A stretch of 64,000 bases of DNA, taken from Bugula neritina. Its lineage: Eukaryota; Animalia; Bryozoa. Location of the stretch: contig OZ037767.1 in the NCBI GenBank assembly GCA_964035545.1, forward strand, positions 7,946,581 to 8,010,580, read 5' to 3'. Positions 3,001 through 58,800 of the stretch are shown here, piece after piece. Numbering within the stretch: the first letter of the stretch is position 1; every line of letters starts with the position of its first letter. The notes under the pieces are model-generated. The model worked only from the letters and a program-made list of their open reading frames with translations, ran no database searches and was not told where the DNA came from. The translations under genes and the position numbers were made by a program.

Positions 3001-6000
3001 TAAAAAGAATATAGAGCTAGCAAAACATCCATACTGAGGAAAAGATGTCATTTCAGCATCGTCATATTATATAAGACAAATGTAATGCTTATAATACTTC
3101 TACAAGAAATAAATGGAATAATGAACTAATTGCAGTGAACAGATAATGTATCATTACTAAAAAAATTAATATTTTACTCCACCAGTCTCTCAGACTATAA
3201 CTTTCACTGGAAGTATTTTTTGGCAATGCCTACTTTTTAATTACTGAACAATTATTAAGCAATAATTTAATGCATTTCAATGATTCACATGCAAATTTGT
3301 TGCTACAACAAATAAAGCAAAAAGTAAATAATAACAATCAAGTCAGTAAAAAGCCTCAAACTATTGCTCAGTTTTACTCATATTATATATTGCCTGACCA
3401 CAACACAGGTACAGCACATGCACAAACTTTGTTAACAGCCATTCAAATGCAAATTAATTTAAGCCATCTCACTGCAAATTAGGAATAAAAAGAAATATTT
3501 TATTCAATTTTGTCACCTTCAACTTATTGTCGCTCAACTTCATGCGTATTCATTTCATTCGTTAACTATTTTATTATAACTACATTTAGTGTCCTTTTTG
3601 TAATATTTAAATGTTGAATTGCAGCAACCAAGTTACTTATAAATTTGTGCTTTTAAGCATAATTGCAGTCTTCTACTCTTTTTCAAATTTGAAGCAAATC
3701 TAGACAATTTTAAAACATTACTGCATGTATGCTTTAGTTGTTTTTAGTAATAATTGCAGAATGATTACCAAAAAATACCGCATGAATAAAACATGCGGTA
3801 ATATGTATTTTGAAATTGCTTAGACTTGTTCTAAATTTAAAAAGAAACACAAATATATAAAAAAAATGAGTAAACTTACAATACTTGGCAGCTTCTCCAG
3901 GATCTCCCAACCTGTTGTATAACTCTATTCTACCAATATGATAAGATATTCCAAGGTCTAGCCTCCACCACTTGTCTCCACTGTTACTACCTGATGAGTG
4001 AGTGAAGTCACTTACCACATCAATTATTTCATTAACTGCTAAACTTGCTGGATAAGCTATAGCAGGATTAAAATTATCCAGCTGGTGAGTATACTTCTTA
4101 TAGGCGATGTTGCAGCTTCCTAAAACGGTTATAATAATGCTAGATTAGCTAACTTTAAATGCAACCTACTATTTATTGTTTACTCATTATATATCCCCGT
4201 AAATTTTTGAATGCATGGTTATCATAAACAAAAAACATGGGCTAAATGTTCATGTTGTTTTATATTTTCCTAGTTTAATTATTTTATTATACTTCTAGTT
4301 TTTATAAAGAGTAACTGTGAGAGGCTTATGTAGACTAACTGACCATATTATAGCTGAAGTTCTATAGCCGCTGTCACTTTAACATAAATTATAAAATAGA
4401 CAATTCTGAGAAAGTGCTTGTAACAGCTGATCTACTACCCAAGATCAAAAACCCATGTAACTGAGTACATTTTGAGTAAACTAAACAAAATAACTATACT
4501 AAACGTTTATGGATAAGTGTGCATCAAACTCAAACAAGCCTATACATTATTGTTTTCAAGTTTATTGTTTAAGGGTTAAACAAATATAGGAAAATTTTAT
4601 AGTCTGCATGGCAGTCCCACCATGAGAACACTAATATAGGTGTCAATGCTATAGAAGCTATACAAAAAATGTGTCCTATAAACCCTCTATGCCAAATTTG
4701 AACATTTTAATAGCTTTTTTTATATATTAATTTAATTAATTTATCCTATGCTAACTCCAGTTCCGCCTAAATTGATTATGAAACTTTTTTTACTAATGCA
4801 AAGTTCCTTCAGCAAAAAAAGAATTATAGTTTAGATTATTATATTAAAACAAACAATAAATAAAGTTTATTGTTATACTAAAAAGAATAATCACTAATGT
4901 ATTGGTTGAGTGATAACTATTTGAATATATAGCATATAAAGAACTTTTACTTAAAATTATGCTAACCACATATTGGAAATTTTTAACTTATTAGAAGTAC
5001 CTGTATTTCCTGTTTGTATAGTCTGACTCACTTCCTGGCTAGCATCTCCTGCTACTACAGCCATTACAGTACACGTGACCTGTGTAGAGGGGGTAACTCC
5101 ACAAGCTCTTGCAAATGTTACGTCAGAAGATACACTGGCCCAGTTGTGACCACCGCATTTATGCTACAAATAAGCATACCAATAAATATAGAATAACTTT
5201 TTTAAGTATTGAACATTTGTAGTATGAAAATTTACAAAGTTTTTCTTCAATTTTTGTTGTGAACAACTAATTAGGATTACTATACAATTCAGAGGTATTG
5301 GCTGAGTGTTGCCTTGTTTTTCAGAAATAATGTTGCAAATCGGTGACTTGAGAGTTGCTTACTCTTGTTTTTATCTAGATTAATGCTCAGGAACTATCTT
5401 CATGTGTTGTAAGATATATTCCTCTCAAGTTTTGAGATATAGAAGCCAATGCTAGAATAGTTGGGCGGAAGTACTATAGAGTCATATAATTGACAGAATG
5501 AAAAAATAAAATAAACATCTAATATTAAACTTATAGTATAGAAACGATACTGTCTTATAATAGCGCAGTTGGCAGTTGGCTCTCGCAGAGGGAGGTTGTG
5601 TTTTCAATGCTCTCTGTAATGCTTTTACTGTTGACATTGTGGCGCAGTTATTGCAGCCTTTGTTTATGCTGGCTTATAATCACCCTCATTTACAAGCCAA
5701 GAGGAGTGAAAGGCCTTGAACATATTATTATGGATTATCAAGCTCTGTTGGATATTAAAAGCTCTATGACTCGACATCAGCTGAAAGATATTTGGAACAC
5801 TAACTACAAACACGCAGTAGGGGTAACGGGGGGGGGGGCACAACGGTCATAGGGGTACAAAAAGACGGCCGAATTGTGAGAGAACTTATTGACTTAGAGT
5901 TGTGATTTTTTCTCCATAAAAAGATATTGACATAATTATTTAGCCTTTGTAGTTTCAACACTTGCGGAACATACGTGTTGAAAAGGCGAGTAAAAAACTG

Positions 6001-9000
6001 TTTTTACCTACTTTTTGTAAATTTTTTAGGATGTCGTTGAAGCCTTATAACTTTTTACACTCAAAGGCAAGAAGCCTAGATTTTACTAATATTGTTGCCA
6101 TTGCTTGTCTCTACAATGCTTAACTATTATAACAGCAAACACTGAAATGAATTTTCCTTGAGGCACATTTATTTTCTATTTGGCCACACGGGGCACAATG
6201 GGCCACGCTGACCGGGGCACAATGGGCCACCTGGTTATTGCACCCTGATCACTGTTATTAGTTTCTTTGCCCAAAAATTTGGTTGAAATGTTACTAAAAT
6301 CTATAGATATAGCCATTTCTGACCTTTTTGTAAAATATCAAAGACATCATGGTAAGACTACAAAACTACAAGTTAAAGCTCTCCTAATACATACATCTGG
6401 TGAGGTTGAAGCTTTGCCATTTTATACATAATACAAAACACTCTGCTGTTGCTACTTGTAGATAGTCATGATAATCATTATATATTACACCATTGAGAGA
6501 ATATACATGCATTTGACTGAAATAAATTGTGATTTGCTAATTTGCTCCCCCCTCTCCCATCCGTACTCCAGTCACAAACCTCAGCCATGCATGCACCTTA
6601 GCTACAGTTCATTGAAACAAGTTCACTCAGAATTTTGTAGTACATTTTAGTAAAGTTTTTTTTAACAAACGTTGCTCTGAAGTAAAAATAACAAAACATT
6701 TTTAGTTTTAAACAGTAATGATAATGGCACTGCAGAACCGAATGACATGCGTTTGATTTTGCCTCCCTCTGCTATTCGTAGTGGCACAAACTGTACAGCT
6801 AAAACATGAATTTTGCTGTAGATCTGAAAGAGTATCTTTATTTATTTGTATTATTAAATAAATAAAGATTAGATATAACAAAATACGCAAAATTTCCATA
6901 TATTTGTTGTGTCCCACCCAGTGGCCCATTGTACCCCGGTACCGGGGCACAATGGGCCAATTTTTTCATCATGAAAATTTCGTTATTCTGAAAGTTGTGA
7001 AAGAGATAGAAACAACAAACTGATACCTGTAATAGACAACAGATGTAGCATTAAGAATAGAGATTATTGAACTAGTAACTTGAAAAACAGACAAATGAGA
7101 GCAACAAATGCAAAATTCGGCCCGTTGTGCCCCCGTTACCCCTAAAGGTTATTGATCCCAGACTTCTTCGATCTAGAAAGAGGGGCAAGCGTGGCGGAGT
7201 TAGAGTCAACCACAGTACTAAAACTGGTAAAGTACCACTACCTGCAGTTGTGCTCACTAATGCACAATCTGTAAGAAATAAACTCGACGAACTCCATGGT
7301 CTCCTTAAAACTAAAAGACTTAGTAACCAATCTCAGCTCATTTGTATAACAGAATCCTGGCTTACTCCAGATGTGCTACATTCAAGAACTGAGCTTGAAG
7401 GATATGAGCAGTTCCGTATGGACAGACTTCCAGATGCTAGCGGTAAAACCTGTGGAGGAGGCATTCTAGTCTATATTGACAACAAATGGTCAACAAATAA
7501 CAATCTTATATTCAACTATATGGACAATCACTGTGAAATTATGACAATTAAATCAAGACCTCACTGGCTTCCAAGAGAGTTTACTTCAATTATCACTGTT
7601 TCATGCTATACTCCCTTCACCGGTGCTTCTAGACTAAAACAAAATGCTTCATCCACAGCTAAAAAAATATCAACACATGTTAAAGAACTAGAAAAAAAGC
7701 ACCCTGATTCTTGCATTTTTGTAATGGGGGACTTTAATCAGCTTCCGATTAAACTTGATGGATACTATCAAACAGTCAAAACACCTACCCGCAACAATAA
7801 AATTCTTGATAAATGCTATATCAGAATCAAAGATGCCTTCAAACAATGCCATCAACTTGCAAAGCTTGGTGGGTCAGATCACTTTATAACACATCTCATA
7901 CCAACCTACACACCATTATCTAAATACAAACCAACTCGAGTCACCAGACTTATATATTCTGAAGAGAACTGTGAAAAGCTGAAAGCAGCATTGGACATTA
8001 CTATCTAGAGTAATCTGCTCTCTGATGATGATAACATCCATCAACAAACTGAAATTGTAACAGACTATATAAACTTCTGCACAGATATTTGCATACCCAC
8101 GAAAAGCTTCAGAACATGTACCAATCAGAAACCTTGGATTACTAAACATATTACAGAAATGATCTATCAAAAACAAGTAGCCCACAAAGAAGGAAACCGT
8201 AAACTATATAATAAGCTCAAACGTGACATCAATAGATCTATAACCAACAGCAAAGTTAATTACTCTAAGAAAATTCAACTACAATTAGTAAATCAACCAG
8301 CCAAAGCATGGACTGATATAAAGAAAATAAGTGGTCTACCACACAGCAAGACAACTACTGCTAAAGCTAACCCATTTACACCTGATGACCTAAATACCTT
8401 CTTCACCCGATATGAAAAGCCTATATCTCATCAGCCTGTTTTTGATAGAAACATTATCAGTGCACCTCCATTGGAAATATCAGAAGACGCTGTTCTCAAA
8501 CAGCTAAAGGGACTAAATTCACGAAAAGGTGCAGGTCCTGATGGTCTCATTCCGAAAGTTTTAAAAATCTGCTGCTATCAACTAGCACCTGTCTTTACAA
8601 AACTGTTTACTTTCTCCATCCAATCTAAGACAACTCCAAATTCATGGAAATCTGCAATGATCAAGCCACTTCCTAAAGTCAAAAATCCTGAACTACTTAA
8701 ACAATATCGTCCAATTGCTCTCACAAGCTGTATATGCAAAATGCTGGAAAGGCTCATCAAACACTACATTATAACTCATACACCTATGGACAAATATCAG
8801 TTCGCATATCGTACAAATCGCTCTACACAAGATGCGCTGTTATGTCTAACTACAACTGTGACAAGTTTCATTGATAAGAAAGCATCCAATTACACAAGGT
8901 GCCTCTTTCTAGACTTCTCTTCTGCATTCAATACTATATCTATTCCAGACCTCATTACGCAACTAACTCATCTTGACTCCAATGTTACTGAGTGGATTTA

Positions 9001-12000
9001 CAGCTTTCTTACAAACAGAGTACAGCGCACAGTAGTGGATGGCATAACATCAAATCCAATCATAACTAACACAGGAACTCCCCAAGGGTGCTGTTTATCT
9101 CCACTATTGTTTTCTATTTACACTAATAGGATTACCTCAAGCCAGAGCAACATCACTGTAATTAAATATGCAGATGACACTTGCATTATTGGCTGCATTG
9201 GCAAACAGTCTGATCTAAATATTTACTTTGACGAGATTAAAATAATTTCTAAGCAATGTGATGATTTAAATATATTATTAAACCCTAGCAAGACCCAAGA
9301 AATGATGTTCTCAACCCAACGTGCTAAACCTCATACCCCTACTCTCGTATTGAATGGAACAAACATTGTATTGTCTGAAAAAGTGAGATATCTTGGTGTG
9401 TTAGTGGATCAGAATTTGAGATTTCATGAACATGTACAATCAGTAGTAACAACAGCATCAAGAAGAATGTATATTGTGAAGAATTTTTCGTATCTTAGCT
9501 CTAAACCTCTAGCAAATATGCTATTCAAAAGTTTCATCATGTCCCGCATCGACTATTGTCTACCTACTATTTTTACTTGTATCTATGCCAGTGATAAAAA
9601 GGCTATTCGAAGAATTTTCAAAGATTGCTCAAAACTCGGAATTAGGTATCTAAACATTGATTTGCACATTCAGAAACTCACTAAAGAACTTGCCATCAAA
9701 TATATAACAGACAATGACCATTTCATCAATAACTTTCTTAGTCAATGCCCTTCTGGAAGATATCGAACCATCAAATATAGAGGGACATGGGGCAGAGATA
9801 GCTTCTTGCGACATCTTGTAAATACTTTAAATGAGCTTTTATTTTAAATAATCCAACAGAGTTTTGATTTTTTCTCTTATTTTTGTTCATTCCTACTTAT
9901 TATAGCCAGTATTTACACTGAATTTTGCAACGTGTTGTCATGTTTGTGATATGTAATAAATCAATCAATCAATAAAACTATTCTATCATATGAGATAAGA
10001 AGAAATTTATAAATATAAGCACCTGTTGATCAATGAATCTTTCATAGGTTAGTTCATGTAGAAAATACCAAAGATTCTTTAGTTGGACAATAAATATTAT
10101 TATAGTAATTGCAACGATGGAACTTACTTTAGAAAATGTTCATCATATACAATGAACACATATATACTTACTGTATATAATAAAATTATAAATTTGATTT
10201 ATACCATGATAACTTTGAAAGGAAATAGGTTTTTATCAGTATAGAAACACTGGTTATATACCAACTAATTTTTATATACATATATATTATAAAACGGGTT
10301 GAAAAACTTACCATATATGATTTAACGAACAATTTCCAGCTGTTTTAATTAAATGTTGAACTATAAGCCAAACTACCTTTTGACAAACTTAAATCTCACA
10401 TTTACTAAATCTTCCGTTTTTTTATACTTTTAAACTATAATTATATTACATGGCCCATATTAATTACCTCATATCTTAAAATGTTTCCATTAGTTCCTTG
10501 TAATGCTGTCCATTCCAAATCAATACAGGTGCTGCCACATGGTGAAAGAGTCAGGGTTAATGATCCATCCCATGATGCTGCCAAATATAAGATGACAGAA
10601 ATAAACACTGTTACCATAATCAAACTGTATTTATATTCAGCGAGAAGTTTTTATTAGGGCACTCAACATAACACAAAAATAACGTAAGTTTACAGTCACG
10701 TCCCTGTGAGAAACCTCTGATGGAACGGTTTTTGTTTGTTAAATTGAGCTACGGTCTTATTCAGATGGGGAACAAGAGCAATTACATGACTGGATGCTCT
10801 TTCTAACAGCCCAAATGGTCTTTGTGCGGGCTCGAATCCATGACTTCATACTTACTATAGGCAAACGCTTTAACCCCTAGACCATAACTGCTCCCACACT
10901 CAACGTAGCTGAGTAATGAGAAAACATTAAAAATGTATGTTGCAGTGTACTTTTTAAAAAAAAAATTATATTTGTTACCAGTTTGTCAATTAAATGCTAA
11001 AACCATATCAATATGATTATGTGAGTATACAAGATTCAACAAATCGATAGTGAAGCAGAATCAAGCAATTGAGAATAGCATTATTTTTAATCTGTAAAAT
11101 GGTGGCAAGGTTTCAGGCTGTTAGTGTTACGTCATATGCAAGACCTTTATCATTATATTATATTTTAATCTATTATAATAGTTCATCGACTGGGATACAT
11201 CACTGAAATGGCAATGGTTGCTTTTCAGCTGAAAATTATTTTTGCTCACTGCACAACTACTCATATAATGAGCTTTCAAGTAGAATGGAGTTGACATTCT
11301 TCAAAGGGCAGAGTTTGTTAACTTTGATAAATCTGTTTTGCTAGCAATCCAGTGTTACTAAAATTATTTACTGCAAGACATATAGATTGCAAATGACAGT
11401 ATATGGATTTGATACAATTGATCTTTTACCTGATACATAAATTTCCACTTCGGTAAGAGCCAAAGTACTGTTAGGTGTAGACCTGTATACAGCTATATAT
11501 CTGGCATATATCTGTGGGTTGAACAGTATGATACCAACTGGACCATAAGGTTCAACTTGATAGCTCTGCTCTGTCCACTGCAAGCAGTTGCGACATGGTG
11601 GAACTGAGTTTGTTGTTGATGTCAGAATAGAGATGTTTTGAAGCCTGTTATCTAAATAAAATGACAGGAGCAGTATATGATATAGTAAATTAAAAACAGG
11701 TAGCAACTAATCAAATCTTACTAAAAAGCATAGTAAAGAGTAGTAACTAGTAAGTAAATCAATTTTTATTGAATAAAGCTTATAGGCTACTGAAAATTGT
11801 TGTAATATGCTAAGATCCACCTACATAGTTGATCACAGTTTTAGAATCAAGGCAATTCAGTTTGCGTGAAATACATGTAAAATATGTATAAATTGGTCAA
11901 TACTTGTGCTGAGTGCTCTATAATCAATGCGATGCTTTTAACCCTGTAAAAAGTGTCAGGGGGTAAGAATAAGTACTACAAATATGCTTTTCAAAATTTA

Positions 12001-15000
12001 AACCAAGAGTCGTTCAACTTGAGATTATATATACTAACAGTACAGGCCTTCAGAATTTTCTCCTTGTCTGTTAAACAGCTCTATTCTTCTGATAAAGTAT
12101 TCACTGTGTAGATCCATTCTCCACCAGGAACCATTATTTAACTTTGTGTGCGAAAAATCATCATAGTTTCCATTATTTCCTTTTGAGGGATAAAATGCTT
12201 CCTCGTCTTGTAGAGAGTTGAGTTGATCAGCAGTTCCTTGCTTTGCAATATTTACAGGTTCTAAAACAGAGTTTGGGAAAGAAATTATTTATCATGCAAA
12301 TGCTTTTATATCCATTTCTATGTAGAATGACTTTTAAGCCGAAGTGTAACACTAATTGAATTTACATGCCACTAACTAAGAGCTCAGCTAGTTTGATTTC
12401 ATGACAGAAGAAAAAAAACTACTTTTGATAAGATATCAAATATAAAACTATACTATAATTTTTGGCTATTCACAGCTTATAGAGCTTTTGTGATTACAGC
12501 CTATTGCTGGAAAACAGAACTCATTCCATCACAATTGAACCAGCAGAGAATAAGCCCAATAAGTTTACTAAGGTTTTACTTTTAGACTTTAGCTAAAATT
12601 ATTATTGGTGTATTAGTCTGTTAGCCATCTATTGGCGGTATATACATAACATATATAATTTGATAAATATATTAGAAATTGCTTTGAAATAATTAGAACC
12701 CAGAGTCCAGTTAAAACTTTTGGATAAGCAAATTTATATATGAACTCTCAGATCAATAAGGGAGAGACCCTTTATTTTCACGGCATGGTTCGAAGCAGGT
12801 GAATAAAGAAAACAATCATCAACTCACTTGCGCTGCCAGTAGTAATGGCTGCACTCTTTTGCTGACTTTCACCCGAGTTTACCACAGCAATGACTGTACA
12901 CACAACATCAGTCTCCTCTCTATATCCACTTACAGTTACTGGCAACTCTTCACTAACATTGTGAACTATCCATTCTTTACCAGTACATTTGTACTACAAG
13001 TTTATTAAAGCAAAGAGTTAAGATATCTATATCACCTATATATCATACCATACACCCAGCATCCAGGTTTAGTTATTGTGATGGTATTTTTGGTGAACAA
13101 TTAAAATGCTACTATAAAATTTGAATACTAAAAATTCAAGTCTGACTTTTGGCAATATCAAAATGATAGACATTTAAATGTGTTCTGTGTTATCGGGAGA
13201 AGCAGCAGCAGCACTAAAATTATAATGCTTCTCCTCACTACTGACCTGTATACTGTGAACATAAACTATCTTGCTTAATCATATAATCTTAATTGACAGT
13301 TTGTTTTCAGTAAAAGCATAAGTGCAGCTTTTAATTTTGAATATCAAGTAAGTGTTTTTGCTTCATTCCGCTAAAAAAGTAAGATATTCACAGTTTTATT
13401 ATGTGACTTCCTTATAAAGATTTTAAAAACAAACTGCTATAACTTTTCATCATTTTACACACAAAATTTTTAAATAACTTAAAAGAAGACAACTCATCTA
13501 ACAAATACTGACAGAATTTATTTTGCTTCTCACATAAATAGCTTTTGCTTACCTCATAACGTGCAACATTTTGAGCTGTAACGGGTGTCCAGGTGAGTGT
13601 CACACTGTCTACATCATTACTAGCAAGTGTAAGGTTTAAAGATGAGAGTTGAAAAGCTGCAAGTAATAATGATGTTTTTTTTATTCTGCTCATCACTTTA
13701 TGTGGGAATTATTCAAACGTCTGCACAAAACCTATTTTTTTCAAATTCATAAATAATTTTTAACAACTATTGCATGTATATATCAAGCAAGTATATTATA
13801 TGCAACATGAAGCCAAAAATCGAAACCTTTATCATATGTGACCCAGGCAGTCAGAAAAGCACTTTGTGACAAAATTCACATTTTTAGTTAATGCTTGATT
13901 CTTATTTGCCTCATTATACTGATTGATTTGCACTTTAAATTTTTGAAATCGGACCACTATTATAATAGTAGTCCGATTTCAAAAATTTAAACTGCAAATC
14001 AATCAGTATAAATAGGCAATTAAGAATCAAGCATTAACTGAAAATGTGAATTTTGTCACAAAGTGCTTTTCTGACTGCCTGGGTCACATATACTAAGTCT
14101 TATAAATACATTTTATAAAGCTATCAGCTGAAAAATATTATTTTGGCATCCCCAATATTTATTAACAGGTATATGTTATACTTTGACAGCCTTTCATGAT
14201 GCCGAAAACTATTCTAAGTTCACTTTAGATGTATTTGTAAAAAATTTTGAGCTTTCGATAGAGATTAATTTTCAATTCAATGAGTTAGTCTAGAAATTTT
14301 TTCAATTAGTTGTTTAGATTCCAGCAAAATGTTAAACCAAAGTGCAATTAATTTTTTCTTTTTCAATTGAATGTCGGTGGATCATTAAAAAAAATATGTA
14401 TAACCCAAATTACTCTGCATGCAAAGATATATGAGGCAACTATAGAACAGTCTAGACTCTAAACTCTAGTACATTGAAGTTATTTATTGAAATCACCTCA
14501 TTTTGTTTGCATTCTACAAGCATATAAAAATATCCTATGCTTTTTCATCTGTTCAGTTTTAAAAAAAACTCACATGAGTTATATACTTCCACTTGTGCTA
14601 AAGCCAGCTGAGCATTATTCTTACTAAACACAGCCACCCATGTAGCTGACACTGGAGGGTTGAGCTGTATGATGCCAACAGGTCCATAAGGTTTTTCCTG
14701 ATAACTTTGAATAGTCCAATACTGAGATGTTAGTGAAGGGTAATAAGCTGTATTACCTTTTACAAACACAGCATTTGAAGTAAGAATGTATATCTTTGCC
14801 AAATCATCATCTGTAATCAAATGAATGGAGTGATTTATTGTAACAGTCATAGCATCTTTGTTTTATCCCTTAGTAATAATCTATTATTTAACTATTCTGT
14901 TATTCTTATATGCATATTATAGTTCTATAGGATATGAAATACAAAGTTGCAAGTTACACAGTCCATCATAGTCATTAAATATAAATTGAATTTCATTTCA

Positions 15001-18000
15001 TTTCATGGTTTTATACTATCTTGCTTTGTAATATAAGCATGACTATATTATATACTCACAATTATGGGTGCCATCAGCATTTGTGGGTCTGTTGTGTATT
15101 TCTATTTTACTGACCAACTTTGGTCCTCCATTAAGTTGTATTCTCCACCAAGCATTACTATTCGAACTAGTCCAACAGAAGCTGCTGTAGTCATCATCGT
15201 TTGCTTTTATACTCCAGTGTTGATTATCATATGAGTTGATCTGATCTGCATTTCCTGGCAGGCGGAAACCTAAAATCAACAAAAGTAAATTGATACTAAG
15301 AATTTACTTTTTATTCTCACAATGACATTAATTTGACTATGGCCAAGAGCTTAAAACTTTTTGAATATGCATGCATGAGTAAGCAATAAACTTGACACCA
15401 TATATAATATTTCTATAAATGGTAATTTTAATATAGAAGTATAATTTCATTCATGCTAAATTTTCAAATATAAATTTTAACTATATGAATAAGTATACAA
15501 AACACATATAGTTTTATTACTTATTAAACAAAGTGTATAATTAACTAATATTTTGGACACCACTGTGCCCATTTTCAGAGTTACAATGAAGGATGAAAAT
15601 TCACTCTGAAGATGGGCACAGTATAGTGCCAAAAATATTAGTTAATTACTTTGTTTAATAAAGTAATAAAACCAAATGTTTTAAGTATACTTATTCATAA
15701 TTAAATTGCTAGCTCATAAAGATATATATTTAAATTGTAAATATATTTAATAAGAGCTATAATGTACATACTAAATATGTACTATAATTCTTAATAGATA
15801 AAGCTTCTGAACTTTTCAAATAAAACATCTGAGATTTCATTATCTTGATAAATACTCCCAGAAAATTTATTATGCTCCAGATTGTGCATGATTTATGTGG
15901 AACTAAAACTGTTCATTTAGATTCTAGTATAATGAATAATTACTATAAATATGTACACAAGCATATTGTGCCAGGGAGAAAATCCTGGCTGTTTGTTAAA
16001 ATTTAAATGAAAGATATGATAGCTTTTTGCAGCTTGTTTAGCTATTTGTTAGCTTTTTGCTATGTATTTTTAATGTATTATAGAAGCGTTAGTAGTTCAC
16101 TTGCCAGGAAGACGCTATAAAGAGCTGATGTTTGTAAGTAGAATTATAATTTTAAAACTTTATGTTTTGTTGATGTTATTTGAAGATGACTTATTTATGT
16201 GTTTTTGGGCAGGATGTATAGCCATTTTTTGATATTTTGATAGAGTACAAGACAAAAAGTGAAAAAAAATTCAAAAATTAAAAAATTGTTGCTCCATGCT
16301 TGTTACTAGCCAACTCACTAAGCTAAGTCATTCCTGGCACACATATTATTGTGCACTACAATGGGTTGCAATAGAATTGCATGCCATACTAATAGATATT
16401 TTAAGTACATATAATTATGCACATGCTTGCTAATATTTGAAGAACAAAACTATGTAATAATTTATAGAATAGAAATTGTGACAAAGTATTTAGCTAATCA
16501 ATAAAGAAAACAATAAAAAAACTCAGTTAATAATAGATGATGGCTCATAACTTAAAAAACAAAATGGATTTATTGTAAGGATTTATATAGGAGTTATCTT
16601 TAATGTATCAAAAGGACAACGCTCTTACTACTTCGCTACTATAGTAATATACGTAGCGTCCATCATCTACTCGGCCGCTAGTAATGGCCTACCACGCTAC
16701 TAACATACGCTGTGGGCTATGGGAGGAGCCTAGTAATGTGAGCTGACAGCCACTAGGCTTGGGTAGCTGGCATTCAGACAGTGAATTAGCTAGTAACAGA
16801 TTTTGTGTACTCTGTCTGTGGTTATGTAACTTATTTTCTAAGTATTGTATGGTTTTACTTGGGTATAAATTGTATTAAATAAACATGAGTATAATAGTCT
16901 CTTTAACTTGGCAGTATTGCATTACTTTAAATACCCAAGCAATCAGTTAATGCACAGTTTCATGACATTATTAATGAGTTCTTGCATGTTATTTGTAGCA
17001 ATGCAAAACTAGTCAGGTATATTATTTAACTTTTAGACTAATTGGGGTCAAACATCATCAGTACAAGAAATCTCTAATTATAGAGCTGAAACGATAACGA
17101 GAGTTATCTGCATGCTAGCTTGACTTGTAAGCATATTATCACTTCTATGTTTAATCTTGGCAACAATACTAAACTGGTGCTATTCTAATCACACAGTTGC
17201 GCTGATACTTTATTCAAAATAGTTTCGATTATCAAAACTAAACTAAAAGCATAATTCAGAATTCAGCTCAGAATTCAGACGACATTTTTTAATAATGACA
17301 ATCAGTGTCATAGACAACAACTTCAACGCAGCAACGTTCATTTTCTCCATTTATAATCTTTTATTAGAGTCTCGTTATTTGGTATGAAGAATATTTTACT
17401 CATAAGAAATTAATTTCCACTAAACATCAGGTAACTGTATTTCACAAATCTAGTATAATTATATAGTACTCTCAAACATAAATTATGAGTTTTCTCAGAC
17501 AAACTATTACGAGTGCAGATGTAAATTTTAACACAATTTAGTAGATGATGGATGAGTAACTCTTATACAACATGTGCAGCAAATGGCCAGCAAATTATAA
17601 TACCTAAATATGCACCTGCTCAGGTGGAGTTGATTAATTACTTAAACAGTTAAAAGTCACTCACTATTGGAGACCAGCAATATATAAAAAATACTTGGAT
17701 TTTAAACTAGTTTTACAGTGTGTATAGAATGTATTGAATATAGTGAAAATCAGTCACTTATATTACTACTTTGGAGTTATGTTCTTTGTATAATTATATA
17801 TTCCATATTACATCATTTTGTAACCTGTTTCCTTTTTACCCATAATCCCTCTCTTTTGTTTCCTGTGTCTCCATTAAAATAAACTGCTGAACTATATTGC
17901 TAAACTGAATAATCTATTTACATCTACACAGTTAGTTTAAGGTCATTACTTTCCAGATTCAGGCACTGCTTTATGTTATATATAAACGGTTTCCAGGGGA

Positions 18001-26100: not shown

Positions 26101-26198
26101 GTTTGTCAATAGATTGATCAGAATATTATGCAGCAATAATATAAGATTATTTACTTTTATACCTATATAAAGCTAAAACTCGTATGCTGAGTCATCAA

Positions 26199-26204
26199 TT
26201 TATT
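26199..26204 (-). terminator. Candidate polyadenylation signal (AATAAA) of gene B
   Basis: AATAAA on the minus strand about 360 nt after the stop and just before the duplicated promoter region of gene A. The AT-rich background makes chance hits common. Confidence 0.35.
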
Positions 26205-26566: not shown

Positions 26567-42043
<15,477 letters not shown>

Positions 42044-45050: not shown

Positions 45051-46028
45051 AGAATAAGAAGCAACAAATGCCTATGATGATGAGTATCGGAAAAGTTTAT
45101 AGCATGGTTTACAGCAAGGAAGAAACATGTTTTTTCAACTATGCTATGTAGGTATATAATAAGTGCTATAATGTATTTAAAAACACTGTTACATAAGCGT
45201 TTTGAAAGACAGTTTATATAGTGAATAAATTATCTGACTAGTCAGCACAGATTTGGTATTGTAGCAGCAAAAAATACATTCTATTCTCTTTAGCATTAGA
45301 TTGAATATGCAAACATGAGAATATAACTAGTGTCACTATGTCAATTAAATTACAGGAACAACAATAATTGTGATCTCATGTATCAGCATTTCAACTTTGA
45401 ACTTCCTCTTTACTAGACTGATTAGTAGTTCTATATAGCAAGCAGTACAGACAAATAATGCATCTATTAATGCCACAGTGTCTATATATCAAAATTCAAC
45501 ACAGCCTTTTCTCTAGGATTAAATTTCTTCATATCTTTATCAAACAATAGGTGTAATTATCTATTTCACATCTCAAACATAGCAGTTCAATAATCCATTA
45601 TTTTGTGGCCTTTTCTTTAATCATAGTGTACTTGTATATGCTTGCAAACATATTATGTCCCAGTGTGAATTTTTCAATTGCAATCATTAGATTCTGCTCC
45701 ATTTTGTTCAATGACCAAAAAACTAGGCAAACTATATCAAAACATCATAACAAGCCTAAAAATGTGATGATAATTGATTATAATACAAGGTAACCTTTAA
45801 ACAGCAATTTTGTAATTCTATAAAAAAATGTTTTATGTACAGTAAAATAATTGCAAATATTTGACTGTTTTGGCATATTTACACCTTAAATTAATATACT
45901 ATTATTTTATAAAATTATCTAAATTTCTAATTTCAAATTATACACTAATTATAGTCGTATTATATAGTTATGCTAGTTATAGCTGCATCTGTTATCCTTA
46001 TTATATGATGTTATATAAACTCACAACC

Positions 46029-46182
<154 letters not shown>

Positions 46183-46634
46183 GCTGTAAGAATAACACAA
46201 GCCATGCAGAGTAACTTTTAACCCAAGTAGTATAAACATAGTTGATTCCAAAAGAAACAGCCTGCAATGGCAAATAATATTAATGCATTGGCTATATTGA
46301 ACCAGTTTACAGTGGCAAATATATAGTTGCATGAGATGTCTATTAAAAATGTCATGGGGCTTTTTATGACAAGCTTTGTATTAGAGAAACTGTGTGAACT
46401 AAGTTCTAATTAGTAGCAGGCTAGTTATTGGCTAGTAACCAGTCTAACTATTTTGGACTGCTTGATTGTAACCACATCAACATAGTTTTATCTGGGCGTA
46501 GCTTTTATACTTGAGTGGCTAGGAGGTAATAAGTTTTACAACCACAGCTATGACCTTTGTGTGATAATGCAAGTGTATGAATAGATAAGGTTATCTACCA
46601 GTGACAGGCTGTTGAAATTTGCTTACTGTCAAGA

Positions 46635-49800: not shown

Positions 49801-52800
49801 CACACCCTGACCACCATCTTTGCACTAAAAATAAAAGTTCTATAATAATCACCGATGGTAGGAATTACACTTATATCGATAACCTTTGACTATGACCAAT
49901 GGTGCACCAGCGATTTTAGCTTTGAGACCAAAGTTAATCAGTAATCAAATGTTTTTGTAGATTGATTTTTTGCGTGTTTAAATACACATGTCATTATACT
50001 ACTATTACATACTAATTTTTGAAAAGAAAAAATCCTCAACTATAAGTGACATAATGATCAGTGATTTAATTATATCTGCCTCTCATATATTTTTGATATA
50101 CATTTAGTTGCTTTTTGTGGTAATTATATAACAGTATTTGACTATACTAGTAAATGTTTTTAACTTCTAGCTTATATTTTGCATTCTTAATTTTAAATAA
50201 ATTGGCAATAGCTACGATGACATTCAACATAACACAGCCAGGTTTTATTTAGCTATGTAGCTTGATATACATAATTGGTTATTTTTGTCTCTTACTAAGT
50301 TCTTGGTTTTAAGTTTGATAATGTTAAGTGCAGTGCTTGTGTCAATTGGTGCTGCTTTGTTAAAATCTAAACTTTGCTTAAATATGTGCCGATAATGCTT
50401 TATTTAGAAGTTTCTCATACTATAAACATCTCAGCCCCTCCTGCATTCACTCAGGTTAAGTGCTTATAGCAGCCTAACTGCTATAATATATATTTTTCTC
50501 TTTCCTCTGATCACCTGATTTTCAATTATGTGCATATATTAGTATCAAACTCATTATGTGCATTTAATTCTAAATAATAATATCAAAACTTCCTTTATGT
50601 AGTTACCAATTAGTTCAAGTTTGTAATTGTAGTTACAATATGCATGGAACTTTTGGCGTGTAATAAATTTGACTATGGAACTATATATTTTCAAAACAAT
50701 GTTATACTCAGTTGAGTACAAAATCATGCATATTGTACAAAGCAATTTCGGTTTTTAGTATGAATGGTGCCATTGTAAAAATAATTTTAATAAATTCAGA
50801 ATAATATTATTTTGCTTCTGTTGATTTTAGGTTCCAGACTGCAGGGAGCTGCTGATCAGATCAACTCAAATGATGATCAACACTGGGCTATCAAAGCAAA
50901 CAATGATGACTACAGCAGCTTCTCTTGGACTAGTTCAAATAGTAATGCTTGGTGGAGAATACAACTTAATGGAGGACCAAAGTTAGTCAGTAAAATAGAA
51001 ATACACAACAGACCTAGAAATGCTGGAACCCACCAGTGTGAGTTTATGATATTATAGTCATGATTATATTACAAAGCAGGATAGTATAAAACCATACAAT
51101 GAAAGTGCTATATATTCAATTTATGTTTAATGACTATGATGGACTGTGTAACTTGCGACTTTGTATTTCATATTGTAGAACTAATATTCATACAAAAATA
51201 ACAGAATAGTTAGATAATATATTATTAATAAGGGATAAAACAAAGATGCTATATGACTGTTACAATAAATCACTCCACTCACCTGATTGCAGATAATGAT
51301 TTGGCAAAGATATACATTCTTACTTCAAATGCTACGCTAGAGAAAAGTAACCTAGCTCATAGACCTTCACCAACATCTCAGTATTGGACTACTCAAAGTT
51401 ACCAGGAAGAACCTTATGGACCTGTTGGCATCATACAGCTCAACCCTCCTGTGTCAGCTACATGGGTGGCTGTGTTTAGTGAGAATAATGCTCAGCTGGC
51501 CTTAGCACAAGTGGAAGTATATAACTCACGTGAGTTTTTTTTAAACTGAACAGATGAAACAAGCATAGGATATTATTACATGCTTGTAGAATGCAAACAA
51601 AATGAGCTGATTTCAATAAATAACTTCAATGTACTCGAGTTTAGAGTCTAGACTCTAGACTGTCCTATAGTTGCCTCATATAATTTTGCATGCCTGACAA
51701 ACTAGAGTAATTTGGGTTATACATATTTTTTTAATGATCCACCGACATTCAATTGAAGGAGAAAAATTTAATTGCACTTTGATTTAATATTTTGCTGGAA
51801 TCTAAACAACTAATTGAAAAATTTCTAGGCTAACTCATTGAATTGAAAAGTAATTTCTATCAAAAGCTCAAATTTTTTTACAAATACATCTAAAGTGAAC
51901 TTAGAATAGTTTTCAGCATCTTGATAGGTTGTCAAAGTATAACATATACCTTTTAATGAATATTGAAGATGCCAAAATGATATTTTTCAGCTGATAGCTT
52001 TATAAAATGTATTTATAAGACTTAGTATGATAAAGGTTTCGGTTTTTGGCTTCATTTTGTATATATACTTGCTTGATAGTATACAATAGGTGTTGAAAAT
52101 AACTTATGAATTTGAAAAAAATAGGTTTTGTGCAGACGTTTGAATATTTCTCACATAGAGTGATGTGCAGAATAAAAAAACCCATCATTATTACTTGCAG
52201 CTTTTCAACCCCCATCTTTAAATCTTACACTTGCTAGTACTGATGTAGACAGTGTGACACTCACCTGGACACCCGTTACAGCTCAAAATTTTGCACGTTA
52301 TGAGGTAAGCATTAAAAGCTATTTATCTAAGAAGCAAAATAAATTCTGTCAGTATTTGTTAGATGAGTTGTCTTCTTTTAAGTTATTTAGGAATTTTGTG
52401 TGTAAAATGATGAAAAGTTATAGCAGTTTGTTTTCAAAATCTTTTTAAGAAAGTCACATGAAAAAATTGTGAAAATCTTACTTTTTTAGCAGAATGAAGC
52501 AAAAACACTTTCTTGATATTCAAAATTAAAAGCTTCACTTATGCTTTTACTGGAAACAAACTGTCAACTAAGATTATGATTAAGCGAGAGAGAGTTCATG
52601 TTCACAGTATACTGGTCAGTGGAAGGGAAAAGCACTATAATTTTAGTGCTGCTATTGCTTCTCCTGATAACACAGAACACATTTAAACGTCTATCATTTT
52701 GATATTGCCAAAAGTCAGGGTTGAATTTTTAGTATTCAAATTTTATAGTAGCATTTTAATTGTTCACCAAAAATACCATCACTATAACTAAAAATGGGTG

Positions 52801-55800
52801 CTGAGTATATGGTATGGTATATATGTGTTATAAGTATCTTAACTCTTTGCTCTAATAAACTTGTAGTACAAATGTACTAATAAAGACTGGATAGTTCACA
52901 ATGGTAATGGAGTGCTGCCAGTAACTGTAAGTGGATATGGAAGAGAGACTGATGTTGTGTGTACAGTCATTGCTGTGGTAAACTCTGGTGAAAGTCAGCA
53001 AAGTAGTGCAGCCATTACTACTGGCAGTGCAAGTGAGTTGATAATTGTTTCCTCTATTCACCTGTTAAACTGTCATGGAAGCAAAGGATCTCTTCCTTGA
53101 TCTGTGAGAGTTTACATAGATTCACTTATCCAATGGTTTCAATTGGGCTCCAGGTTCTAATTATTTCAAAGCAGCTTATAATATGTTTATCAAACTATAT
53201 ATATATATTTTGTATAGTGTATTTATTCAATAAATACTAAGAGAGCAATAATTCAGCTAGAATCTAAAAGTAAAACTATAGTAAACTTGTTGGTCCAATT
53301 CTCTGCTGGTTCAAGTGTGATGGAATGAGTTTCAGTTTTTCAAAAAATTACAAAAGCTCTATAAGCTGTGAATAACCAAAATTAGAGTATAGTTTTACAT
53401 TTGAAATCTAATCAAAAATATTTTTTTATTTTGCTATGAAATTAAGTTAGCTGAACCCTTCCTTAGTGGCATGTAAATTCAATTAGTTCAACACTTATAG
53501 GTTTAAAAGACATTTTTTTAAAAATGGGATGTACATGTATACTTTGTATGATAAACCGTTTATATTATTACTTAAACTCTGTTTTAGGATCTGTTAACAT
53601 TGCAAGGCAAGGGAAAGCTAATCAAATTAACTCTCTAGATAACAATGAAGCATATTATGCTGCAAGCGGAAATAATGGAAACTATATTGATTTCTCACAC
53701 ACAGACTCAAATGATGGTTCCTGGTGGAGAGTGGATCTACACAGTAAATTCTTTATTGGGAGAATAGAGTTGTTTAACAGACAAGGAAGGGATTCTAATG
53801 GTCCTTACTGTTAGTATAATCTTAAGTTAAATGACTCTTGGTCTACATTTTGAAAAGCATATTTGTAGTACTTATTCTAACCCCTGGCACATTTTTCTGG
53901 GTTGAACGCATTGTATTGATTAAAACTCTCAGTGCAAATATTGATCAATTTATACACATTTTATTTGTATTTCACTCAAATTTAATTGTTTTGACAATAT
54001 AATTGTGATCAACTATGTAGGTGGAGCATAGCATATTATTATGACAATCTTTTTACCACAATTTTTTGCCATGATTTTCAATATAAATTTCATTTAATAA
54101 AAGTTGATTTACTTGCTACCACTCAGTCAGCTGCTTTTTTAAATATAATTGAATTATTTGCCACCTGTCTTTAACTTACTATATCATTTACTGTTCATGT
54201 TGTTTTATTCAGATGACAGACTAGATAACATATCTATTCTGACATCAACAACAAACTCAGTTCCACCATGTCGCAACTGTTTGCAATGGACAGAGCAGAG
54301 CTATCAAGTCGAACCTTATGGTCCAGTTGGTATCATACAGTTCAACCCACAGATATATGCCAGATATGTAGCTGTATACAGGTCTACACCTAACAGTGCT
54401 TTAGCTTTAACTGAAGTAGAAATTTATGTGTCAGGTAAAAAAATCAATTGTATTAAATCCGGTTCCTTTCATTCGTCATTTATATGTCTTGTAAATAATT
54501 TTAGTAACAATGGATTACTAGTAAAACAGATTTATCAAGGTTTCTGTTGTATACAAACTCTGTCTGTTAAAGAATGCAAACTTTATTTTACTGGAAACTT
54601 TATTATGGCTAGTTGTGCAATGAGTCAAAAAAAGACTTTTAACTGAAAAATAGTCATTATCATTTCAACAGCGTATCTCAGTTTATAAAATGATTTTAAT
54701 TTAATGAAATTATAATATAATGAACAATAAATGTCTTGCATATGATGTAACACTAGCAGTCTAAAACACTGTCACCAGTGTACAGATTATAAGACTGCTA
54801 TTTTCACTTGTGTAATTTTGCTTCATGCACTATTAATAATTGGTTTTAATTTTCATGTATATAGTCACATGATGACATTGATAGGGTTTTAATTGACAGT
54901 TTTAATTGGCAAATTGTTAACAAATATAAATAATTTAATTGAAAAATGCACTGCAACATAAGTTATTATGTTTTTTCATGACTCAACTATGTTGAGTGCC
55001 ATGATAGAAATTTCTAACTGAATATAAATATAGTTTGATTATTGTAACAGAATGTTTATTTATATAATCTTATATTTGGCAGTATCAGTTGATGGAATGA
55101 TAACACTGACTCTTTCACCATGTGGCAGCACTTGCATTAATTTGGAATGGACAGCATTACAAGGAAGTAATGGAAACCTCTTAAGATATGAGGTAATTGC
55201 TGTTGGTTATATATGTGATATAGGAGCTATACCATTAGGAACTATGTTTAAGGTTATAAGATTTAAGCTTGTCAAAAATATGGTTTTGCTAGTTAAATGG
55301 TACATAATTATGCATGCTGCAAAATATTATTAAACAAATTTCACTGAACTGCAAATTTTGTATGTGTTTTTAAATTACAAATAATTTGGTACTTAAGATG
55401 AACTCAGCTGCAAAAAAATCAGTGTTACATGCCTATAGAGTTCATTTATGTGTGTGCGAGTGTGAGTGTTATATTATATGTGAATAGTGCTGTTGATAAG
55501 TGCTACTTTCATACTGTAAGTGTAACAAAAAAGTATCTTGATTGAACCAGGCTCTAGCATTCTGACAAGGTATACCTGTTCAAGTTTCCTGATCACAGTC
55601 ATCTCCAAATCTTAATAATAGAAAAGTTACAAAACATACAAACATCATTACACACTTTTCATTCACAACTTATAATTTCTACTATAAGTGTAATCAGTAT
55701 TGTTAGAATAGCCGAATGTTAGTGTATTAGAGTGATTCTTCCATAGTGTATAAGTTTGTTAGAAAAGTTTTTGAATAAATGTAAAACTCAGCCTATAGTG

Positions 55801-58800
55801 TAGCTTAGCTAAACTAAAAAAATGTATGCTGCACTTGTCCCATCCCTATAACTTATACTATGTGTTTTTATTATTGTTTGTCAGTATAAATGCGGTGGTC
55901 ACAACTGGGCCAGTGTATCTTCTGACGTAACATTTGCAAGAGCTTGTGGAGTTACCCCCTCTACACAGGTCACATGTACTGTAATGGCTGTAGTAGCAGG
56001 AGATGCTAGTCAGGAAGTGAATCAGACTATACTAACAAGAAATACAGGTACTTCTAATTATAAATTAAAATTTTTCAATATGTGGTTCGCAGAATTCTAG
56101 GTAATTTTTCTTTTTATATGTTATATTTAAATAATTACCACTCAACCAATACATTAGTGATTATTCCTTTTAGTATACTAAGAACTTTTGTTTTTTGTTT
56201 GCTTTAATATATTAATCCAAACTATAATCTTGTTTTTAGCTGTGGGAACTTTGCATTAGTAAAAAGAATTCATAATCAATATAAATCATATAAATAAAAT
56301 TAGCATAGGATAAATAAATTAGAATAATATAGAAAAAGCTATTCAAATGTTCAAACTTGGCATACTGCCTATATAGGACATATTATTTGTTGTAGCTTCC
56401 ATAGCATTGACACTTATATTATAGTTTTAACATGATGGGTCTGACAGACTATAAAATTTGCCTATATTTTTTAAACTTTAAACAATAAATTTAAAAATAA
56501 TAATATATAGGCTTGTTTGAGTTTTATGCACACTTATCCATAAACGTTAAGTAGTCATTTTGTTTAGTTTATTTAAAATATACTCAGTTACATTGGTTTT
56601 TGGGTAGCAGATCAGCTGTTGCAAGCACTTTCTCAGAATTTTTTATTTTATAATTTATGTTAAGGTGACAGTGGCTATAGAACTTCAGCTATAATATGGT
56701 CAGTTAGTCTACATAAGCCTCTCACAGCTACTCTTTATAAAAATTCGAAGTATAATAAAATAATTAAACGAGGAAAATATAAAACTACATGAACATTTTA
56801 GCCCATTGTTTTTTATTTATGATAACCATGCATTCAAAAATTTACGGAGATAATGAATAAATAATAAATAGTAAGTTGCATTTAAAGTTAGCCAATTTAG
56901 CATTATCTTAATCATTTTAGGTAGCTGCAACATTGCCTATAAGAAGTATACCAACCAGCTGGATAATTATAATTCTGCTAATAGATTCCCAGCAAGTCTA
57001 GCAGTCAATGGAATTATTAATAATGAAAGTGATTTCACTCACACATTAAGTAGTAACAGTGGAGACAAGTGGTGGAGGCTGGACCTTGGAATATCTTATC
57101 AGATTGGAAGAATTGAGTTATACAACAGGTTGGGAGATTCTGGAAAAGCCGCCAAGCATTGTAAGTTTATTCAAATGTCTTTATATTTGTGTAGTTTTTT
57201 TTTCAAATTTGGAACAAGTCTAAGCAATTTCGAAGTATAATATATTACGGTATGTCTCATTCATGCAGTTTTTTTGTAATCATTCTGCAATGATTACTAA
57301 AAACAACTAAAGCATACATTAATATTTTAAAATTGTCTAGATTTGCTTCAAATTTGAAAAAGAGTAGAAGACTGCAATTATGCTTATAAAAGGACAAATT
57401 AATTAGTGATTTGGTTGCTGCAGTTCAACATTTAAATATTACAAAAAAGGACACTAAATGTAGTTATAACAAAATAGTTAACGAATGAAATGAATATGCA
57501 TTAAGTTGAGCGAGAATAAGTTAAAGGTGACAAAGTTGAATAAAATATTTTTTTTATTCCTAATTTGCAGTGAGATGACCTAAATTAGTTTGCATTTGAA
57601 TGGCTGTAAACAAAGTTTGTACATATGCTCTACCTGTGTTGTGGTCAGGCAATATACATAAGTCATTTTACTTAATTTAGTACACATTGGAAATCTCCAG
57701 TTTTCAGCTATTTTTTACATTTTAGCTGCTAATAAACAAAGGTTTTTGCCCAAAACTAGTAAAGTATAAATGAACATCCTAAATAATTGAAGTTCTTCTT
57801 AATTTTACTTGATTTCCCATGCATTTTTTCTATTTATTCTGCTACTTCTGATTGCAGACCATTACGGTTTTTTTTCGTAAAAGCTCGCAATCCAAGTTAC
57901 TTAAATAAATAGGAAAAACATGGGAAATCAAGCAAAATTAAGAAGAACTTTGATTATTTATATGTATTTATAAATATTTTACTGATTTTGGGCAAAAACT
58001 CATGTTCATTAGCAACTAAATTGTGAAAAATAGCTAAAAAATGGAGATTTCCAGTGTGTACTAAATTACGTAAAATGACCCATATATGAGTAAAACTGAG
58101 CATTATTTTGAGGCTTTTTACTGACTTGATTGTTATTATTTACTTTTTGCTTTATTTGCTATAGCAACAAATTTGCATGTGAATCATTGGGATGCATTAA
58201 ATTATTGCTTAGTAATTGTTCAACAATTAAAAAGTAGCCATGGCCAAAAAATACTTTTAGTGAAAATTATAGTGTGAGAGACTCATGAAGTGAAAAATTA
58301 GTTCTTTTAGTAATGATACATTATCTGTTCATTGCTATTAGTTTCGTATTTCATTTATTTTTGTAGAAGTATATTATATAAGTATTATATTTTTCTTATA
58401 TATTAAGACGATGCTGAAATAACATTTTTTCCTCAGAATGGATGTTTTGCTAGCTCTATATTCTTTTTAAAGATTACAGACTTGTGAAGATATCAGTGTT
58501 GACATCAGATGTCTATTCACCTGGTCCACCATCTTTAAGTGCTACCACCTGGACAGTAAGAGATGGTCCCAATAGTAAAGCATATGGACCCGTTAGGATC
58601 ATAGAGTTTAGTCCACAGATATCTGCAAGACATGTTGCTGTGTACAGTGAAAGTACTGAGCCTCTCTCTTTGACAGAAGTAACGGTGTATGAGTCAAGTA
58701 AGTAATACTATATTAATTATTATTATTATAATTGGTGAAACAATGTGTGTTAATTATTATCTTACTTATGAGAAATATACTTTTCTTCTTTCTATTGTGT

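Follow-up and report, generated by a model that had tools for sequence, protein, structure and literature searches.

Here we analysed a window of 64,000 nucleotides from the bryozoan Bugula neritina (contig OZ037767.1, positions 7,946,581 to 8,010,580; coordinates below count from the first letter of this window) that carries three paralogous genes, A, B and C, each predicted to encode three F-type-lectin-like domains. The paralogs differ more in the exon encoding the N-terminal half of each lectin domain (N-half) than in the exon encoding the C-terminal half (C-half). The explanation we favour, with moderate confidence, is that near-neutral rim loops are carried on a constrained core and pocket, and that mosaic gene conversion has spared the N-half lineages. 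Two causes of roughly equal weight, unequal constraint and unequal genealogy, would then act together. With respect to constraint, approximately 40% of N-half codons, mostly in the rim loops, would evolve at a ratio of non-synonymous to synonymous rates (dN/dS, or omega) of about 1, with the core and the pocket strongly conserved, while some 19% of the C-half would be that free. With respect to genealogy, gene conversion or unequal crossing-over with breakpoints in introns, including the intron in the middle of the lectin domain, would have turned the array into a mosaic, in which the C-halves have been homogenized within one genome while the N-halves and their flanking introns retain older lineages common to another genome. 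To our knowledge no recognition receptors have been described in bryozoans, and whether these lectin tips are driven to diversify decides between an immune or allorecognition-type repertoire and an ordinary multigene family.

Comparison of the window (G+C 30-35%) with itself resolved three paralogous segments, whose similarity runs on through the introns:

Segment A, ~1-17.5 kb, minus strand (self-comparison)
Segment B, 29.7-41 kb, minus strand (self-comparison)
Segment C, 47.4-62 kb, plus strand (self-comparison)

Exon models were derived from three-way alignments of A, B and C, the splice junctions being supported by conservation, by phase and by homology that extends across them. Each gene has 12 exons, in the order lectin N-half, lectin C-half, FN3-like a and FN3-like b, three times over; all borders are GT-AG, the two-exon modules are all phase 1-1, and 726 codons are open, without a stop, in each of the three genes. 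The predicted ectodomain is an F-type-lectin-like domain followed by an FN3-like domain, repeated three times. Each lectin domain is split over two phase-1 exons by an intron that falls in the loop aligned with complementarity-determining region 4 (CDR4) of F-type lectins. The N-half exon holds CDR1, CDR2, the pocket histidine, CDR3, the first arginine and most of CDR4 (four of the five rim loops); the second arginine and most core strands are in the C-half exon. The anchor residues of CDR1, CDR2 and CDR4 follow Vasta et al. 2017 (PMC5712786), with the loops placed by alignment to the eel agglutinin AAA and to FBP32, while CDR3 is the loop after the pocket histidine as judged from topology, a literature search for a definition of CDR3 having given nothing. 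The lectin exons, with loops and pocket residues located by homology, are as follows:

15060..15269, minus strand, gene A lectin 1 N-half (GT-AG, phase 1; its gene C counterpart resembles F5/8 type C in Pfam)
14574..14810, minus strand, gene A lectin 1 C-half (exon model)
12039..12260, minus strand, gene A lectin 2 N-half (exon model and quoted peptides); CDR1 12193-12222, CDR2 12151-12168, His 12148-12150, CDR3 12127-12144, Arg 12067-12069, CDR4 12040-12066
11430..11651, minus strand, gene A lectin 2 C-half (‘exon 7’)
3880..4119, minus strand, gene A lectin 3 N-half (exon model and quoted peptides); CDR1 4052-4081, CDR2 4001-4027, His 3998-4000, CDR3 3971-3994, CDR4 3881-3910
2773..2997, minus strand, gene A lectin 3 C-half
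39331..39540, minus strand, gene B lectin 1 N-half
38589..38825, minus strand, gene B lectin 1 C-half
35983..36204, minus strand, gene B lectin 2 N-half (exon model and quoted peptides); CDR1 36137-36166, CDR2 36095-36112, His 36092-36094, CDR3 36071-36088, CDR4 35984-36010
35090..35311, minus strand, gene B lectin 2 C-half
31403..31642, minus strand, gene B lectin 3 N-half (exon model and quoted peptides)
30522..30746, minus strand, gene B lectin 3 C-half
50831..51037, plus strand, gene C lectin 1 N-half (one codon shorter, in CDR4)
51293..51529, plus strand, gene C lectin 1 C-half
53588..53809, plus strand, gene C lectin 2 N-half (95% identical to paralog D, described below); CDR1 53626-53655, CDR2 53680-53697, His 53698-53700, CDR3 53704-53721, CDR4 53782-53808
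54213..54434, plus strand, gene C lectin 2 C-half
56921..57160, plus strand, gene C lectin 3 N-half (exon model and quoted peptides); CDR1 56959-56988, CDR2 57013-57039, His 57040-57042, CDR3 57046-57069, CDR4 57130-57159
58473..58697, plus strand, gene C lectin 3 C-half

The initial annotation of this DNA had quoted 18 peptides from the N-half exons as examples of paralog differences, and each was found exactly once, at the expected place (gene A, minus strand, 3986-4075 and 12043-12213; gene B, minus strand, 31509-31598 and 35987-36157; gene C, plus strand, 53635-53805 and 56965-57054). The lectin-3 N-half exons of A and C end at the limits that it gave, 3880 and 57160, and what it called ‘exon 7’ corresponds to the lectin-2 C-half. 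The near-uniformity that it ascribed to the C-terminal exon holds for exon 7, where A and B differ at 4, A and C at 5 and B and C at 3 of 74 residues, compared with 17, 25 and 20, respectively, of the 74 residues of the lectin-2 N-half; the C-halves of lectins 1 and 3 are less uniform, with up to 12-13 differences. With the three domains pooled, 71 of 221 N-half columns (32%) vary among A, B and C, compared with 32 of 225 (14%) in the C-halves (odds ratio (OR) 2.85, Fisher p=1e-5). Within the N-halves 46 of the 97 columns in loops aligned to CDR1-4 of AAA vary against 25 of 124 elsewhere (OR 3.6, p=2e-5), an enrichment that across the three genes has p=0.019 in lectin 1, 0.09 in lectin 2 and 0.001 in lectin 3. 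The earlier placement of the variable positions at the CDR1-4 loops is therefore borne out as an enrichment, with loops assigned by homology only, and not as a rule, as 35% of the variable N-half columns lie off the loops, in the beta2-beta3 hairpin, the helix region and the bottom loop. CDR1 is the most variable loop and CDR2 is conserved; in-frame insertions or deletions, in any copy, are confined to loops, and WWRxDL, IGRIELxNR and the pocket histidine are invariant within the N-half.

Because the loop limits were set after the data had been seen, a test that needs no loop definition was added. The three domain types, which are 33-42% identical to each other, share seven columns that vary in all three, compared with 2.2 expected (p=0.0016), and 29 columns that are invariant in all three, compared with 20.6 expected (p=0.00015). 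Of the seven recurrently variable columns, all but one fall in CDR1, CDR3 or CDR4 (alignment columns 17, 18, 42, 44, 73 and 76 of A1 are among the recurrently variable ones). The loops concerned would, by homology to solved F-lectins, ring the sugar pocket.

Further copies of these exons placed the array in a wider genealogy. Upstream of the window, at a distance of ~12-20 kb, is a fourth paralog, D, in which all 12 exons recur with good splice sites. Its lectin-3 N-half (~1689-1931 of contig segment 7926581-7936580, minus strand) carries a one-codon insertion just before the WW motif that creates an in-frame stop, and D is either a young pseudogene or the product of an assembly error. A word-based protein search also recovered exon-sized open reading frames from two Joint Genome Institute (JGI) metagenomes (samples 3300002729 and 3300003318), whose contigs add ten lectin-2 N-halves, eight lectin-2 C-halves and two lectin-3 N-halves, with both halves of one domain present on seven contigs. 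The introns of matching lineages are ~9-13% off the reference, indicating that the metagenome copies come from a related genome rather than from this assembly. One of the metagenome copies of the lectin-2 N-half, L025 (299-517), ends in a stop without a GT donor; its relative L023 (2373-2597) has a two-residue insertion in CDR2, and both have a mid-domain intron of ~850-900 bp of a type absent from the reference paralogs.

The genealogies of the two halves are not the same. Synonymous divergence, expressed as the pooled proportion of synonymous differences (pS) over the three domains, is 0.228 in the N-halves and 0.128 in the C-halves, a 1.8-fold difference (p=0.002 after down-weighting for non-independence). 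Between A and C the lectin-2 N-half exon has diverged (0.178) to the level of its flanking introns (0.185 and 0.179), whereas the C-half exon is at 0.081 and its introns at 0.179 and 0.198. For the ten copies with both halves, the N-half and C-half trees reject each other in the approximately unbiased (AU) test (0.002 and 0.009), and monophyly of A-D, which is rejected by the N-half (AU 0.029), is the maximum-likelihood (ML) tree for the C-half. The synonymous distances are consistent with these topologies. For the C-halves the nearest reference paralog is at 0.10-0.13 and the nearest metagenome copy at 0.20-0.23, while the corresponding values for the N-halves are 0.22-0.34 and 0.18-0.28.

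Relationships also change along the gene. C and D share 95-96% identity over the stretch from the intron preceding the lectin-2 N-half to the one following FN3-2a. At the lectin-3 N-half A and D reach 98% identity, and around lectin 1 and in the lectin-3 C-half the closest pair is A and C; the pattern at quartet-informative sites changes from AC|BD to AB|CD to AD|BC. The nearest paralog thus shifts from place to place and adjacent segments have conflicting trees, the hallmarks of a mosaic tandem array. In the lectin-3 N-half 12 sites join B and C against A and D, although the flanking introns of B are very diverged. Convergence was considered as the cause of this likeness and is ruled out, as five of the 12 shared sites are synonymous, which points to exchange by descent. 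The mid-domain intron measures 335-896 bp and comes in at least three mutually unalignable types. In the lectin-2 mid-domain intron of the metagenome copy L015, 288 nucleotides align to the otherwise unique 671-bp intron of gene B and 102 nucleotides to that of gene C, and the N-half exon is of the C/D type, which suggests a recombination breakpoint inside this intron. In the reference genome dN in lectin 2 is 0.151 for the N-half and 0.035 for the C-half, and this 4.3-fold ratio factors into a ~1.9-fold deeper genealogy and a ~2.3-fold higher omega. The synonymous excess and the conflicting half trees therefore indicate that about half of the contrast between the N- and C-halves reflects history, in the form of gene conversion and lineage age, rather than selection at the protein level.

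Diversifying selection on ligand specificity had been proposed in the initial annotation on the basis of the loop differences. Selection was evaluated with a Goldman-Yang codon likelihood program of our own on IQ-TREE trees, one tree per exon, with relative branch lengths fixed from the one-ratio model (M0). The lectin-2 N-half set comprised 13 copies from the window genes, D and the metagenomes, leaving out the partial copy L022 and masking the last three, broken codons of L025. Pairwise Nei-Gojobori dN/dS among A, B and C is 0.3-0.6 for N-halves and 0.14-0.78 for C-halves, and the overall omega of these genes is 0.42-0.49. Pooled over A, B and C, dN/dS is 0.62 in the top loops and 0.32 in the rest; by loop it is 1.82 for CDR1, 0.40 for CDR2, 0.47 for CDR3 and 0.42 for CDR4. 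M0 omega is 0.41 for the lectin-2 N-half and 0.26 for the C-half (12 copies). M1a splits the N-half into 60% of codons with an omega of 0.06 and 40% with an omega of 1, while in the C-half 81% are constrained, 19% are at 1 and none are above. The M2a model adds to the lectin-2 N-half a class at 1.11 that does not improve the fit over M1a (2dlnL 0.14, p=0.93), and in the same 13 copies neither M7 against M8 (p=0.39) nor M8a against M8 (p=0.54) is significant; across site models the fast class is at 1.0-1.14, and F1x4 frequencies leave the outcome for lectin 2 unchanged. There was likewise no omega class above 1 in lectin 3 (six copies, p=1.0) or lectin 1 (four copies, p=0.60). When sites were partitioned, the lectin-2 top loops had an omega of 0.54, below 1 at p=0.006 (13 copies). 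CDR1 of lectin 2 was at 0.85 by ML and CDR3 at 3.4 (p=0.15), so that only CDR1 (1.8 pairwise) and lectin-2 CDR3 reach or exceed 1, neither significantly. In simulations on the lectin-2 tree, omega of 3 on 20% of codons was caught in ten of ten replicates and omega of 2 on 30% in eight of eight, with no false positives in eight.

Pervasive diversifying selection of even moderate strength is thus excluded. A loop dN/dS of 1 or less had been named in advance as one of the results that would speak against the initial claim of diversifying selection, and, with loop omega at 0.54-0.62 and every site-model test null, we do not uphold that claim as far as dN/dS measures it. The F-lectin-like domains and the enrichment of differences in the rim loops stand from that annotation, and the pocket histidine and first arginine are fixed in lectins 2 and 3; the N-half synonymous excess and the conflicting genealogies of the two halves of one domain had escaped it.

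Selection confined to very few codons is still compatible with the data. Diversifying selection on glycan specificity might be limited to a handful of rim residues (the CDR1 apex, the residues after the pocket histidine and CDR4), or be episodic, such that dN/dS over wider regions stays below 1. We consider this doubtful, although it accounts for several observations. The same few columns vary in three anciently diverged domain types; the estimates for CDR1 (A/B/C) and lectin-2 CDR3 are, as above, 1.8 and 3.4; young pairs differ almost purely by non-synonymous changes; N-half lineages last across genomes while C-halves are homogenized; and the rim changes around a fixed pocket histidine and arginine, a pattern shared with the eel fucolectins and oyster bindin (PMC5712786). 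Set against this are the lack of a significant likelihood-ratio test, at high power for omega of at least 2 on at least 20-30% of codons, the significantly low omega of the lectin-2 loops as a whole, the clear constraint on CDR2 (0.13) and CDR4 (0.36), the third of variable sites that lie off the rim, and a synonymous divergence that is raised too.

It should be emphasized that several points weigh against near-neutral loops on a converted array, the explanation favoured here. An omega near 1 is also expected from a mixture of purifying and positive selection, and the CDR1 and lectin-2 CDR3 values, albeit not significant, lie in that direction. The young pairs, C-D in the lectin-2 N-half and A-D in the lectin-3 N-half, together show 15 non-synonymous and two synonymous differences, a bias that is not significant and involves a paralog, D, with a stop. 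Survival of N-half lineages across genomes while C-halves homogenize is also the expectation under selection that maintains diversity. In addition, bootstrap support for the A-D clade of the C-half tree is only 72%, the loop limits were drawn late and by homology, recombination breaks the assumption of a single tree, and the codon code was self-written. The sparing of the N-halves may well have been passive, with divergence itself blocking conversion; that their persistence was instead selected, because diversity is useful, we regard as rather unlikely. A stronger and more speculative proposal, to which we give somewhat less credence still, is that the N-half exons are long-lived ‘specificity cassettes’, shielded by selection for receptor diversity from the conversion that homogenizes the array, and re-paired with C-halves and other domains by recombination in the mid-domain intron. 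Were this true, a colonial animal would possess a germline combinatorial repertoire of lectin receptors, generated by a bindin-like mechanism, for self/non-self or symbiont recognition.

The contrast might, alternatively, be purely genealogical, with the C-halves (and FN3-like exons) converted, the N-halves unconverted or imported from other members of the array, and both halves under equal constraint. The 1.8-fold synonymous excess of the N-halves, the conflicting half trees and the mosaic array are all in keeping with such a history. Equal constraint, however, is contradicted by the difference in omega between the halves (0.41 and 0.26 under M0, and 0.5-0.6 and 0.14-0.35 in pairwise comparison), the variable N-half sites are non-randomly placed around invariant WWRxDL, IGRIELxNR and pocket histidine, and between A and C the C-half dS is as high as intron divergence with the protein still conserved. 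We therefore view this explanation as very improbable, and conversion restricted to the C-half is rejected as the sole cause, since omega also differs between the halves. Decay of the copies, through relaxed selection on redundant or pseudogenized paralogs, is suggested by the in-frame stop in the lectin-3 N-half of D and the broken exon end of L025, but is the least credible of the alternatives, as A, B and C keep all 726 codons open over 12 exons with every splice site intact, overall omega is well below 1 (0.42-0.49) and 60% of lectin-2 N-half codons are held at 0.06.

The assignment of the domains themselves rests on homology to solved structures. Searched against the Protein Data Bank (PDB), the lectin-2 N-half exon matches only F-lectins (3cqo, FBP32, at 7e-9; 2j1r; 3le0; 1k12). 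The top matches of a profile of nine N-halves are all solved F-lectins, from FBP32 (3cqo, 3e-18), through lectinolysin and a pneumococcal fucolectin-related protein, to the eel agglutinin AAA (1k12, 4e-6), and the only matches of a C-half profile are the same F-lectins, at weak values (0.02-0.17). Against the Pfam families F5_F8_type_C_2 and F5_F8_type_C the N-half exons alone score 27.5-27.6 bits, compared with a cut-off of 27.8, and the C-halves have no match. AlphaFold, run with a 20-row alignment on the isolated N-half exon, returned no usable structure (predicted local distance difference test (pLDDT) score 41). The pocket histidine and the first arginine are invariant in all copies of lectins 2 and 3, at the spacing of His52 and Arg79 in AAA. 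The second arginine opens the C-half (xRL) in A-D and is serine or glycine in three of the 12 C-halves, all three of them metagenome copies. The canonical F-lectin motif is H-X24-R-X-D-X4-(R/K) with an adjacent Cys-Cys pair (PMC5712786). It is not kept here, as the residue at +2 is glycine or threonine and not aspartate, the Cys-Cys pair is missing, and the second arginine follows the first by 12 residues, compared with seven in the motif. The calcium motif h2DGx is also not found, the segment aligned to AIDGN of FBP32 and AAA lacking Asp-Gly in the three domain types. In the lectin-1 domains of all paralogs (15060-15269, 39331-39540 and 50831-51037) tryptophan replaces the pocket histidine and aspartate the second arginine, and canonical F-lectin sugar binding by this first domain of each protein is unlikely. 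The domains are thus F-type-lectin-like by homology, with fucose binding putative, and doubtful for lectin 1; that the proteins bind glycans is presumed from this kinship. A literature search found no paper on bryozoan F-type lectins.

The FN3-like half exons, six in each gene, lie between and after the lectin exons:

Gene A, minus strand, 13553-13656, 12828-12993, 10468-10577, 5001-5163, 2307-2419, 1950-2118
Gene B, minus strand, 37861-37964, 36767-36932, 34381-34490, 33351-33513, 30098-30210, 29733-29901
Gene C, plus strand, 52201-52304, 52867-53032, 55083-55192, 55885-56047, 59054-59166, 59356-59524

The first of these in gene C (52201-52304) has a weak match to Pfam fn3, and Pfam returned nothing useful for the C-half and other FN3-like exons. 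Among the N-half matches of the genome the longest open frame is no more than 121 amino acids. Additional FN3-like exons follow lectin 3 in C (59899-60093 and 61785-62069) and A (1455-1577 and 3-191). No counterpart was detectable downstream of gene B (24000-29700), which may be a truncated gene or may continue into another 3' part; when signal-peptide exons and the 3' parts of gene B were looked for, no convincing candidates emerged. The intron of gene A between FN3-2a and FN3-2b (5164-10467) reaches 5.3 kb, its counterparts in B, C and D only 0.6-0.9 kb. Within it, a 1.3-kb stretch (5821-7133) shares 90% identity with 31766-33078, which belongs to another intron of gene B, and also partly matches 24835-25000; this stretch is probably a mobile-element insertion. 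Between A and B is an inverted repeat (21345-22142 and 22628-23425) with arms of ~800 bp at 99.4% identity and a spacer of ~485 bp; a 198-bp piece of it recurs at 40993-41186, and the whole looks like a foldback or transposon-type element. The region between B and C holds two long dinucleotide microsatellites, at 41129-41375 and 46009-46218, which were read as (TA)n and (AC)n from translated frames.

Currently the array presents a mixed picture with respect to recognition. Its geometry fits such a role, as the rim loops vary and pocket residues are fixed, and its genealogy hints that N-half diversity has been preserved, but the signature of dN exceeding dS is absent. The closest known case is the sperm bindin of the oyster Crassostrea gigas, in which repeated F-lectin domains each contain a size-variable mid intron, recombination there makes new domains, the variable sites gather on the face that bears the pocket, and the basic triad is missing from some repeats (PMC5712786). 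The bryozoan genes similarly combine repeated F-lectin-like domains with a mid-domain intron of variable size, its unalignable types, the conflicting trees of the halves it separates and the three C-halves without the second arginine adding to the resemblance. Eight pocket sites of bindin are under significant positive selection, in contrast with the array described here, where no such selection is detectable; bindin is, furthermore, a single-copy, highly polymorphic gamete protein, whereas the bryozoan genes are tandem paralogs with FN3-like domains between the lectins. The split domain and its recombining intron nevertheless offer a testable comparison across two lophotrochozoan lineages.

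Among the eel fucolectins (AAA of Anguilla anguilla and eFL-1 to 7 of A. japonica), isoforms are 68-78% identical, the His/Arg/Arg triad is conserved and variation resides mainly in CDR1 and CDR2 (PMC5712786). A variable CDR1 and a fixed pocket are common to both systems. The eel proteins, however, are secreted and single-domain, with a calcium site and a strictly conserved CDR4 (RGDCCGER), while the bryozoan CDR4 is five residues longer, lacks the aspartate and Cys-Cys and is variable, CDR2 is conserved and the calcium motif is absent. The best sequence match of the N-half, at ~30% identity over the aligned half, is striped bass FBP32 (PDB 3CQO), a tandem F-lectin whose domains differ in their rim loops; it has two domains and no FN3 spacers, and a domain split like that of the bryozoan genes is not known for it. 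In the MHC, plant NLR and KIR/Ly49 clusters conversion between neighbouring genes homogenizes the framework, and old, divergent lineages persist in the segments that contact the ligand. The mosaic pattern of the bryozoan array is the same as in these clusters, in which, in contrast with the array, the contact residues display dN in excess of dS.

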